Notes under the pieces: model-generated | What the model was told of the DNA's origin: nothing | The model's input: the letters and a program-made list of their open reading frames with translations, nothing else | Database searches by the model: none | NCBI RefSeq assembly: GCF_964194025.1 | Contig: NC_134475.1 | Span: 3,038,001 to 3,102,000 of the forward strand | DNA from: Convolutriloba macropyga | Taxonomy: Eukaryota | DNA: 64,000 nucleotides | Direction of reading: 5' to 3' | Position numbers and translations under genes: made by a program | Shown: positions 34,601 to 60,661 of the stretch, in pieces | Numbering within the stretch: the stretch's first letter is position 1 | Layout of the letters: the number at the start of each line of letters is the position of its first letter

Positions 34601-37513
34601 TTGTCAGCTAAGATTTGTTCTGCAGGAGGAGGGGGAGGCGGTGGCAGTGTACTGAACTCATCGTTTTCTACTTCATCTTCAGCTAATTTCTTTTTCTTCT
34701 GGCCACGTTTGCTTTTTGTGACCGGTGCTTTAAGGGAGATGGTATCAGTTCCAGACATTAACAAGTTATTCTCGGGGTCAGAGATTGGAGCTGAAATTGA
34801 AAGACAAAACTCTAGCTTTGTTAATTTGCGAACACTTGGGACCTGTTTTCTGCCCACACTTTAATTGTAAAACGCATATTTTTAGGTTACTTAAGAATGA
34901 AGACGTGATGACCTGAAAGTAGGGCAGAAATGAAGTTAAACGGGGAAAAACCAAATATGGCTGCCTCTAGACGACACAGGAAGATTGTCACAGCAACTAA
35001 TCTCCTCACAAATTCTACTCACAAACTAACCAGCTTTTGCAAGATACCTTCATTTTAAAGCCTTTTGCGAGATTCCCCTCATTTACAAACATTTTTCAAG
35101 AAAACTGTCCAGGTTAGATCAGTGTGGTACCTAAAATATCACCCCCAGCAGTGGCTGTTTCCAGTTGCTTGTCTACAGCGGCTTCTTTATTAGCCCCTCT
35201 GGCTTTTCGACCACCCGCCCTGACTGGAACCTTGCTAGTTTTGGAGGACTGCTTCCCGGATGACGCAATTTTCCCACCTTCATTTTCATCATCTTCCTTG
35301 TAGTCGGGTACCTTGCACAATAAGACAGACAGTTACCACGCTACACTCCTCTTTTTATGAAAAATTTTGCAATAATTAAAATCCTTGTTTATCACCCTAA
35401 TTCATGAAAATTATTACAGATTGATCATTTTAGAAAAATACAAAACTTCTTTGTATATTCACATTAAAGCGAGGGTTGGAAAGGGATGGGTTTTTGAGTG
35501 GAGTTGAGGGTCTCAAGGGGATTCGGGTTAGAGGGTGGAATGAGGTGCGGGAGGTGGGGACGGAGTAAGGGGTCTAAACCGTGAAAACTTCCCCTCATCA
35601 TAATCACATCTCTCCTCAGCAGCTTCAGTGATTTGAACACTTAGAGGCTATCTAAGTTAAGCTATAGACATCAGGCCGACCTTTTTTCTCCGGCCAAAAC
35701 ATTTTTACGCATCTTAGAAAGATCAGCACGGTACCATACAAAAGCCCATAATTTTTTTAATAAAATAGCCAATACCCCTAATCTGCTATGCACAAACTAA
35801 GCCCCCTAAAGCGGAGCGAGAAACTGGTTTAACTAAATTTTAAAATTTTTAAGAGAACAATTTCTGACGCGTAGAACACATGCGGTCTGTTTTCGCTATT
35901 AACTCTTATGAGTGTTTTACGAACGCTACTAAAGGTCATACACATATTCTAATTGTGCGTAAGTGTCAGCTGTCTGAATCCCTGAATTTGCACCTATGGT
36001 TTGAACAATATTTAAATGGCACTTCAGAGGAAAAAAAACATTGTGGAACTTTGAATTTGCTCGTCTTGTGCCGTTGTGTTAAGTTGTCTTGTGAGTAATT
36101 CAAGCTGTTTGTGGTATGCACGCATTCAAATGAAACATAGGTGTACCATTTAGTTGTTTTCAGTTTGGAGTTATATGATTGTTTTCGACCTTCTTGTTTT
36201 CAAAACTTTTTTTGAAAACAAATTTTGATATTTGTCCATATTTATATTTCCGCGAAAAAGTTTATCTTTTTAATTAGCTTTTTGAATACTTTATAGATCT
36301 ATTGTTAATAATTTTGTATTGACAGCTAGCCGATCTAACCGAAAGATTAAGTGACCTTCTTGGCAGTCCAAAAAGGATCAAGTGAGTCTTCTCAAGGACT
36401 TTTAGTTTTTGGCAAACAGTTATTGATTTCCACACTTTGTTCTCATGAAAATTAAGGGTTTTTTGATCTCTTGTCTTACATCTTTTTTGTTCTCGTCATT
36501 GGTTTTCATTACTTCTGTATTGGTTTTCATTACTTCAACATGTTTTCACTAATGCTTCTATGAATTTTACCAATTTATTTTGCACAATTGCAAGTGCTCA
36601 GTTACTGTGAGTGCATGACGTACTACGGGCACAGACACAAAAGATCCAAATTGTTTTCATTAAATCTGATTGTTCTCATTACCATGACAAAATTAGGTGA
36701 TTTTTGAGTTCTGATCACATTTACTGTTTTCTGTCTTATCATGTCAACTTAGCCATCAATTTTCGTCCATTTAATTAACTTGTCTCCAAAGAGTTTTGAT
36801 CACAATCGGCTGATCAAAGACAGATAGTTGCATCGATTATTTACTTTGCTTTTATTGGTTTCGGAGCTTTTGACTCAGCTACTTTTTAAGAAAATGAGTT
36901 TCGTTTTCTCTGGCTTTTTTTGTATGGTCGAATGCTTTGGTGACTATTAAGGTCTAATGCTCCCAAAACGGCTAGTGCTTTACCTAAATCAACTGTATTG
37001 ATTTACAACTGTATTGAGGGACTTTATTATTTACATCACAATCCTCAACAATTCTTAACCACATGCCAAATCATTTTTTGGTCTCTTTCCGCAATCATTG
37101 CTCTAACTTTGTAGTGAATTTGATTTCTCATCTTCCTTCAACTCATGTTTCGTTCTCTCATTGACGATATTGACCCACACACTCGCACGAGCCACATTGT
37201 TAAGCTTCCGTTCGAAAAGACTCCGTAGAAAAAAATTCTACTTTTTAAAAAAACCATTAAGACATACTAATCAAAAACAAAAATAGAACTTTGAAAACAC
37301 TTGATGCAGTCACTTGAACATTCAAAATTCTAACCAGATTAAATTATTTGTTGTTAGAAAGCAACAATTACATACCTTTACTGCACGTCTTCGAGATCTC
37401 GCACTCTCCACTGTAGAAGGTTCATCTTTATGAACAGCTGATTGATCATTTTCGGGCTCTATTTCCACTGCTTTTCTACCAGCTCGCCGGGAAGACGATG
37501 CAGTTGCTGGCAT
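13635..37513 (-). CDS. ENTR1: ENTR1/SDCCAG3-like endosome-associated trafficking regulator (disordered N-terminus, C-terminal coiled coil); 10 exons, about 483-492 aa
   Basis: Phase-consistent exon chain 37376-37513, 35131-35311, 34601-34790, 30097-30326 (GC donor), 29694(or 29667)-29755, 28365-28535, 27876-27949, 25898-26036, 21612-21790, 13635-13722. It contains ANPFSFK (the NPFSF motif I recall from SDCCAG3), a coiled coil LKKENTRLRDEIE...VTELEGELKAIRAKEKKEAETLDRQLKQLESN, and C-terminus QIKNMLSGIERLRQMADVISNMHKFSE resembling human IKQLVSGAETLNLVAEILKSIDRISE. The 3' exons are more secure than the four low-complexity 5' exons. Confidence 0.78.
13736..14125 (-). mobile_element. HINE family I copy with a family B 3' end inserted at 14088
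   Basis: Collinear with 2517-2870, then catagccgtagaataccggaaacgactcga in the A-tract near the host 5' end. Confidence 0.7.
14416..14461. repeat. (TA)n microsatellite within a G-rich low-complexity tract (about 14170-14560)
   Basis: Seen directly. Confidence 0.95.
15640..16996 (-). mobile_element. Two family I HINE copies (5' ends at about 16039 and 16995; 3' end at 16582)
   Basis: aattgctataaacttcgtttgagagcaattaa terminus and shared interior motif tatccc...aaagtcaaatgggt. Confidence 0.65.
17786..21524 (-). mobile_element. Five-level nested HINE composite G[A[B[F[B..]]]] in the last ENTR1-like intron
   Basis: 3' ends open at 17786 (G), 18251 (A), 18605 (B), F interior about 19300, 19384 (B). 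5' ends close in reverse order at about 21170 (B), 21220 (F), 21256 (B), 21470 (C), 21524 (E). Confidence 0.8.
21147..21430. repeat. 86-bp tandem repeat x3.3 made of two fused HINE 5' termini (families B and F)
   Basis: Near-identical units start at 21147, 21233, 21319 and 21405. Confidence 0.92.
23244..23733 (-). mobile_element. HINE family E/G variant, immediately followed by a family I 3' end at 23739
   Basis: ccggcagattgccgg hairpin at left; cttacagcttcgcagctataa 5' terminus at right. Confidence 0.75.
23790..24990 (+). mobile_element. Decayed non-LTR (L2/CR1-like) reverse transcriptase fragment with an internal duplication of about 160 bp
   Basis: FLDLSKAFDSIN, degenerate GVPQGS.LGP.LF, IQYPDDT (YADD), KNLGVHIDSNLTF. 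Direct repeat starts near 24491 and 24651. Confidence 0.8.
25080..25605 (-). mobile_element. Uninterrupted HINE family D/H copy (about 525 bp)
   Basis: subTIR aatagccgc at both ends in inverted orientation; 3' hairpin ccgacagattgccgg; 5' stem aatagccgg...cggctatt. Confidence 0.82.
26443..27829 (-). mobile_element. Nested/chimeric HINE composite G[A..C]D + partial A..C]E
   Basis: G opens 26443, A opens 26899, C closes about 27455, foreign D terminus about 27505, duplicated A segment, C closes about 27774, E closes 27829. Confidence 0.78.
30411..31065 (-). mobile_element. Eroded HINE nest: F-like element followed by degenerate A (about 30963) and B (31034) 3' ends
   Basis: tatagctggcagattgtcagaaaatagc; cgtaacaggacacgtcttgag; catagccagaactccggaaacgactc. 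Confidence 0.6.
31448..32669 (-). mobile_element. HINE family J whose 5'-terminal ~237 bp is tandemly repeated four times
   Basis: Units start at 31731, 31968, 32205 and 32441, each ending gacggcggctatt. Single 3' end at 31448. Single-unit relative at 50063-51077. Confidence 0.85.
34198..34240. repeat. (TG)n microsatellite inside a family I HINE interior (5' end about 34492)
   Basis: Seen directly; tttgagagcaattaa terminus downstream. Confidence 0.9.
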
Positions 37514-37520
37514 AACTGGA

Positions 37521-37528
37521 CTGAAATT
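37521..37528 (-). promoter_or_regulatory. 3' splice acceptor 7 nt upstream of the ENTR1-like ATG (candidate trans-splice site)
   Basis: Minus strand reads aatttcag|tccagttATG. Confidence 0.5.
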
Positions 37529-60649: not shown

Positions 60650-60654
60650 TGCTT

Positions 60655-60661
60655 CTGAAAG
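60655..60661 (-). promoter_or_regulatory. 3' splice acceptor 5 nt upstream of the WDR92 ATG (candidate trans-splice site)
   Basis: Minus strand reads ctttcag|aagcaATG. Confidence 0.5.

Follow-up and report, generated by a model that had tools for sequence, protein, structure and literature searches.

The locus examined here raises the question of how neighbouring genes of an acoel obtain the 5′ ends of their messages, and whether two of these genes are transcribed together. It lies in a window of 64,000 nucleotides (nt) of the Convolutriloba macropyga genome (assembly GCF_964194025.1, contig NC_134475.1, positions 3,038,001 to 3,102,000), to which all positions below refer. Three genes follow each other on the minus strand of this window: WDR92/DNAAF10, triosephosphate isomerase (TPI) and a third gene, here called gene 3. 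A first-pass annotation, made from the letters alone, had proposed that all three are subject to spliced-leader (SL) trans-splicing and that WDR92 and TPI form a dicistron. Our results show that the two halves of this proposal fare differently. The SL half stands, carried by SL RNA genes in the genome, acceptors conserved in a second genus and leader-bearing TPI cDNAs of relatives, and the dicistron is possible but doubtful. We consider it likely that the three motifs in front of these genes are 3′ splice sites that take the acoel spliced leader in trans.

The motifs were read directly from the sequence. Shortly 5′ of its ATG, each of the three genes carries an acceptor of the polypyrimidine-AG kind for which no paired donor is evident, although DNA cannot prove that there is none, and the observation that TTTCAG stands right before the start codons of three co-oriented genes is borne out, the distance being 5-10 nt. 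Among the 1,870 ATGs of the window, 8 have a TTTCAG ending 3-12 nt upstream, and three of these eight are the starts of WDR92, TPI and gene 3. The simplest alternative is that the motifs are functionless chance matches in AT-rich DNA. Indeed, TTTCAG is frequent as hexamers go, the two strands of the window together holding 66 copies, but at a background of about 0.3% per ATG it is improbable that three genes out of three should carry it by accident. Furthermore, all three motifs are conserved beside the orthologous start codons of another genus, and the TPI site takes the leader in cDNAs of relatives. Conservation and cDNAs already contradict a chance origin, which we regard as hardly credible.

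The conservation was established by comparison with two loci of Symsagittifera roscoffensis (L012 and L027), where the three orthologues occur in the same order and on the same strand as in C. macropyga. In this species acceptors are found 6-9 nt before each orthologous ATG. While WDR92 exon 1 is 89% identical between the two species, their non-coding flanks barely align, and it is because the surrounding non-coding DNA can hardly be aligned that the acceptors stand out as conserved. Being both rare at the ATGs of the window and conserved in S. roscoffensis, the three acceptors are therefore more than chance.

A trans-splicing reading supposes a leader and the genes that encode it. The spliced leader of S. 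roscoffensis is a 31-nt sequence, GCCTAATTGTTGTGATAAACTTATTAAATAG (PMC9911081). We searched for it in 1,175,981,408 bases of the C. macropyga genome, the published chromosomal assembly of which measures 1,175.98 Mb (PMC13650328), and found more than 2,600 occurrences, as against 0 for the reversed control. In about 1,600 of the copies GT comes next; these are arranged in tandem repeats of 1.26 kb, and every repeat also contains a 5S rRNA gene. The unit folds into two stems flanking a U-rich single-stranded AGUUUUAUUUGAA (z = -4.8); leader exon, GT donor and fold together identify it as an SL RNA gene. SL RNA genes linked to 5S rRNA genes are also known in nematodes and in further lineages with trans-splicing. 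Up to the donor, the leader of the C. macropyga SL RNA genes is 31 nt long, identical to the published S. roscoffensis leader, and its tail reads ...CTTATTAAATAG. Since SL RNA genes are present, the SL trans-splicing machinery is present in C. macropyga.

Evidence that such acceptors are used comes from TPI transcripts of relatives. In four cDNA contigs, which stem from three TPI genes of related acoels, either the full leader or its tail is joined 10, 15 or 30 nt before the ATG (Table 1). Two of them, L021 and L023, carry the full leader and begin with a sequence that we take to be a template-switch-oligo tail and that marks both as cDNA; a further contig (L009) shows the same gene in unspliced form, with an acceptor at the junction. 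In the closest relative the junction is located 10 nt before the ATG, the same distance as that of the TPI acceptor in C. macropyga. The contigs show leader-splicing of TPI in at least three TPI lineages of acoels besides that of C. macropyga. SL trans-splicing of TPI is hence well supported, the C. macropyga junction itself being read across from the cDNAs of its relatives, and among the three acceptors none has stronger support as an SL trans-splice site than that of TPI. In the cases of WDR92 and gene 3, the position and conservation of the motifs suggest that trans-splicing is likely too. In each case the primary transcript would start at some upstream point, its outron, which reaches as far as the acceptor, would be removed, and the capped 31-nt leader would be attached 5-10 nt ahead of the start codon. 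A leader joined so close to the ATG would result in very short 5′ untranslated regions (UTRs).

Several observations weigh against this interpretation. The leader junctions were read in cDNAs of relatives and carried over to C. macropyga, whereas the evidence on WDR92 and gene 3 consists of motif position and conservation. We found no leader-headed processed copies of TPI, of WDR92 exon 1 or of gene 3 exon 1 in the genome, that is, no fossil evidence of leader-bearing messages. Moreover, in S. roscoffensis 30.2% of genes were reported to be trans-spliced (Martinez et al. 2022, PMC9911081), so that for about 70% no trans-splicing is on record. Finally, an intron spliced in cis within the 5′ UTR would look identical in DNA, from which cis and trans acceptors are indistinguishable. 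At least one of the acceptors, most plausibly that of WDR92 or gene 3, both of which are known here from DNA and not from transcripts, could thus end such an intron, with a non-coding first exon upstream and no leader. We judge this unlikely. In both species only 5-7 nt separate the WDR92 and gene 3 acceptors from the ATG, a pattern like that of the leader junctions in the relatives' TPI cDNAs. The alignment upstream of gene 3 brought up no conserved block of the kind that a non-coding exon would form, and about 720 nt upstream of WDR92 a retroelement begins on the opposite strand. SL trans-splicing at all three sites therefore remains the reading that we favour.

That retroelement points away from WDR92 and is itself headed by an exact copy of the 31-nt leader. 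As an SL RNA gene this copy was rejected, for it is followed by TATG and ORF-bearing sequence (ORF, open reading frame) in place of a GT donor. An Rfam search of the window gave no match.

The ends of the leader call for a separate remark. In the cDNA contigs L021 (1-46) and L023 (1-45), the 31-nt leader is preceded by the heptamer GCTTTTA, and this in turn by ACATGGG, which resembles the tail of a template-switch oligo. These seven bases also stand in front of the leader in SL RNA genes of C. macropyga (L018:87-124), and the 38-nt combination of prefix and leader has 1,158 exact copies in the genome, almost all those listed falling in the arrays of C9. The one dispersed leader copy that was examined, at position 61373 of the window, is without the prefix. 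The mature leader may hence measure about 37-38 nt rather than 31-32. In the tandem repeats on C9 (L018, G000:C9:23192600-23196600), each 5S rRNA gene lies on the strand opposite to the SL RNA gene (113.7 bits).

We then consider the genes themselves. The TPI protein matches the Pfam family TIM (PF00121) over its full length, and its identity is 87% with the TPI of S. roscoffensis and 66-73% with that of other animals, which identifies it as TPI. A genome search showed it to be the sole animal-type TPI copy of C. macropyga. Animal TPI genes usually contain several introns. The gene is intronless in C. macropyga, in S. roscoffensis (L012:10001-10744) and in an acoel-like metagenome scaffold (L022). 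An exact look-up of the TPI protein of the window returned genomic contigs only. Pattern scans of a metagenome contig collection for the leader tail joined to a TPI start, and for the 5′ end of L009, gave 0 hits, but the collection does not contain L009 itself, so that these blanks carry no weight. One candidate for its best relative (P0002, 63% identity) was rejected as an unrelated, duplicated TPI artefact. A second TPI-like sequence, 53% identical and interrupted by one in-frame TAG, is located on a small unplaced contig (L029, G000:C429:34237-34845) and may come from an algal symbiont or a contaminant.

To delimit WDR92, the window was searched by tblastn, with full-length WDR92 representatives and S. 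roscoffensis ORFs as queries. The seven exon blocks obtained, whose limits are approximate since they were placed by homology, span residues ~4-365 of representatives of 353-367 amino acids and identify the gene as WDR92/DNAAF10. Both names were taken from named relatives in the homologue search. The gene ends in a TAG stop (47671-47669), and this stop and the first methionine agree with the termini of full-length WDR92 proteins. The homologue search made with a turtle protein as query (P0121) yielded vertebrates for the most part and, beyond them, other animals, but no acoel. An ENA contig of 174,088 nt (P0271, P0396) contains the last exon of WDR92, 98% identical to that of the window, together with a TPI called as 257 amino acids, that is, with an N-terminus 10 residues longer; this contig is probably the other haplotype.

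Gene 3, delimited by tblastn of S. roscoffensis ORFs, extends to at least position 25949. The first-pass annotation called it ENTR1-like, a label that could not be verified. A Pfam search with its exon pieces gave nothing significant; its NPFSFK motif and coiled-coil-like exons are reminiscent of ENTR1. The gene 3 acceptor is located about 8.9 kb beyond the TPI stop. The tblastn search with S. roscoffensis ORFs revealed no conserved coding sequence in this gap. Part of it is occupied by a ~3.2-kb high-copy repeat, a transposon family with dozens of scored copies on many chromosomes (84-89% identity, from 22,134 first-look candidates), which stops about 245 nt short of the gene 3 acceptor, and a second, very high-copy stretch is also found there. 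These results agree with the annotation, which had placed gene 3 some 9 kb beyond TPI across a gap of transposable elements and had kept it outside the dicistron. Lying 8.9 kb away behind transposons, gene 3 can have no operon-type spacing with TPI. It is surely a separate transcription unit and, to judge by its acceptor, probably trans-spliced on its own. In four genomic DNA runs, depth over 45500-51400 is even across introns and huge across repeats, and the very high-copy stretches at 45500-45893 and 50031-51212 reach summed contig depths of hundreds of thousands to millions.

Table 1. Coordinates of the features discussed in the text. Positions are those of the window unless a source is given; a slash marks the presumed splice junction.
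Feature	Position or source	Strand	Details
WDR92 acceptor-like motif ctttcag (candidate SL trans-splice site)	60655..60661	-	ctttcag/aagcaATG; exon start 60654; ATG 60649-60647, 5 nt on
TPI acceptor ttttattttcag	47138..47149	-	ttttattttcag/attgaacaaaATG; exon start 47137; ATG 47127-47125, 10 nt on
Gene 3 acceptor-like motif aatttcag (candidate SL trans-splice site)	37521..37528	-	aatttcag/tccagttATG; exon start 37520; ATG 37513-37511, 7 nt on
WDR92 acceptor	S. roscoffensis		tctttcag/gaagtaaATG; 7 nt before ATG
TPI acceptor	S. roscoffensis		ccaatttcag/tgagctaaaATG
Gene 3 acceptor	S. roscoffensis		tttattcag/attgtgATG; 6 nt before ATG
TPI cDNA contigs L021, L023	two JGI samples		TPI 87% identical to that of the window; full 31-nt leader, then ATAGCGTAAAATG; junction 10 nt before ATG
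TPI contig L009	JGI sample 3300008998		TPI 87% identical, same gene as L021/L023; unspliced, ttgttcag/atagcgtaaaATG; 119 nt of upstream sequence
TPI cDNA contig L024	JGI sample 3300008998		TPI 82% identical; starts with leader tail, 15 nt before ATG
TPI cDNA contig L026	Logan RNA contig, also in JGI sample		TPI 77% identical; starts with one-base variant of leader tail, 30 nt before ATG
WDR92/DNAAF10 gene	47669..60654	-	placed by tblastn
WDR92 coding exons (seven, approximate)	60654-60428, 60372-60250, 52899-52762, 52376-52251, 48776-48636, 48389-48159, 47876-47669	-	placed by homology; last exon includes stop
WDR92-TPI spacer, 531 nt	47138..47668	-	WDR92 stop to AG of TPI acceptor; 39% T
TPI gene, single exon	46384..47137	-	5′ UTR 47137-47128; coding sequence 47127-46387 (247 amino acids); stop 46386-46384
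AATAAA, likely TPI poly(A) signal	46187..46192	-	~190 nt past stop
High-copy repeat (transposon family), ~3.2 kb	37766..40933		part of TPI-gene 3 gap
Gene 3	25949..37520	-	placed by tblastn; extends to at least 25949
Gene 3 exon 1	37520-37376	-	
Gene 3 further conserved exons (near)	35314-35204, 30307-30089, 29762-29709, 27949-27875, 26050-25949	-	
Leader-headed retroelement	61373..61403, onward to ~62300	+	exact 31-nt leader, then TATG, not GT; ORF-bearing sequence after

The remaining question is whether TPI is transcribed together with WDR92. In an SL-resolved operon, the promoter would lie upstream of WDR92, the precursor would be dicistronic, the WDR92 message would end within the spacer, and TPI would receive its cap and 5′ end solely through the leader added at 47137. 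The spacer was described as about 530 nt long, U-rich and free of AATAAA, and we find exactly this. It comprises 531 nt with 39% T and contains neither AATAAA nor ATTAAA, the only variants being AATAAT at 47551 and GATAAA at 47165. Within this length it must hold the 3′ UTR of WDR92, followed either by a promoter and outron of TPI or by an intercistronic region. Part of what we see fits co-transcription. In a repeat-rich genome of 1.18 Gb, no transposon separates these two unrelated genes, which share a strand and have 531 nt between them, and S. roscoffensis keeps both their linkage and their orientation. AATAAA and ATTAAA are absent from the spacer, whereas TPI probably uses AATAAA. TPI is very likely trans-spliced. 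It is also intronless in both species and could have begun as a promoterless retrocopy; on the operon reading, the intronless TPI may stem from a retrocopy that landed behind WDR92.

On the other hand, the distance speaks against an operon. Intercistronic gaps are usually of about 100-250 nt or less, and chaetognath operons were defined by gaps below 250 bp (PMC12460157), so that 531 nt exceeds the usual range. S. roscoffensis resembles C. macropyga in its identical leader (PMC9911081), in SL RNA genes of the same kind, in gene order and in acceptor positions, but it belongs to another genus and its WDR92-TPI spacer measures 1,186 nt from stop to ATG, as against 531 nt. In that spacer an AATAAA is found midway, about 560 nt past the stop, and the roughly 620 nt left up to the acceptor offer room for a promoter. 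Opposite this AATAAA a weak alignment places the block GTAAATATG of the C. macropyga spacer, near 47284. If the WDR92 message ended near 47270, as this alignment may suggest, the gap to the TPI acceptor would shrink to about 130 nt. In the relative represented by L009, the unspliced contig ends 119 nt upstream of the TPI acceptor. As the only TPI gene of the genome, TPI needs high expression, unlike WDR92, a cilia-assembly cofactor. A search with the last WDR92 exon returned genomic exon fragments only and no acoel transcript bridging to TPI. Taken together, we lean slightly towards TPI having a promoter of its own within the 531 nt of the spacer rather than being co-transcribed with WDR92, and hold the operon to be possible but doubtful. 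Rather less likely still is the more far-reaching version, in which a true WDR92-TPI operon is conserved in the two acoel genera and the TPI retrocopy behind WDR92, expressed through the leader, later replaced an intron-bearing TPI.

The SL2-resolved polycistrons of Caenorhabditis elegans, reportedly described by Blumenthal and colleagues, are like the present pair in that unrelated genes lie on the same strand, the downstream gene has an acceptor near its ATG, and SL RNA genes are linked to 5S rRNA genes. In nematodes, however, the gap that follows the canonical AAUAAA measures about 100 nt, and downstream genes have a dedicated leader, SL2, whereas C. macropyga has one known leader and a 531-nt spacer without the canonical signal, and its dicistron is a candidate drawn from DNA. 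Tunicates, flatworms and chaetognaths use a single leader class for monocistronic and operonic genes, and their operons are enriched in housekeeping genes. Ciona operons often have no gap at all between genes. Those operons are backed by RNA evidence and have very short gaps; by that measure of distance the WDR92-TPI pair, known from its DNA, fails.

SL trans-splicing in acoels is already published (PMC9911081), and the present locus adds a further case to it. Its useful addition is the cDNA evidence for leader-splicing of TPI across acoels. Because the mechanism was already on record, the sites are mainly useful for the correct annotation of gene starts in the new, still unannotated genome of C. 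macropyga. Operons are another matter. The S. roscoffensis paper (PMC9911081) discusses neither operons nor the WDR92-TPI-gene 3 locus, and the papers that our literature search retrieved for operon, trans-splicing and acoel in combination concerned other organisms only. Whether acoels have operons is the question at stake, for which a conserved WDR92-TPI dicistron would be a simple test case. If true, Xenacoelomorpha would thereby have their first documented operon, and the case would have a bearing on the frequency with which operons evolved alongside trans-splicing in animals.

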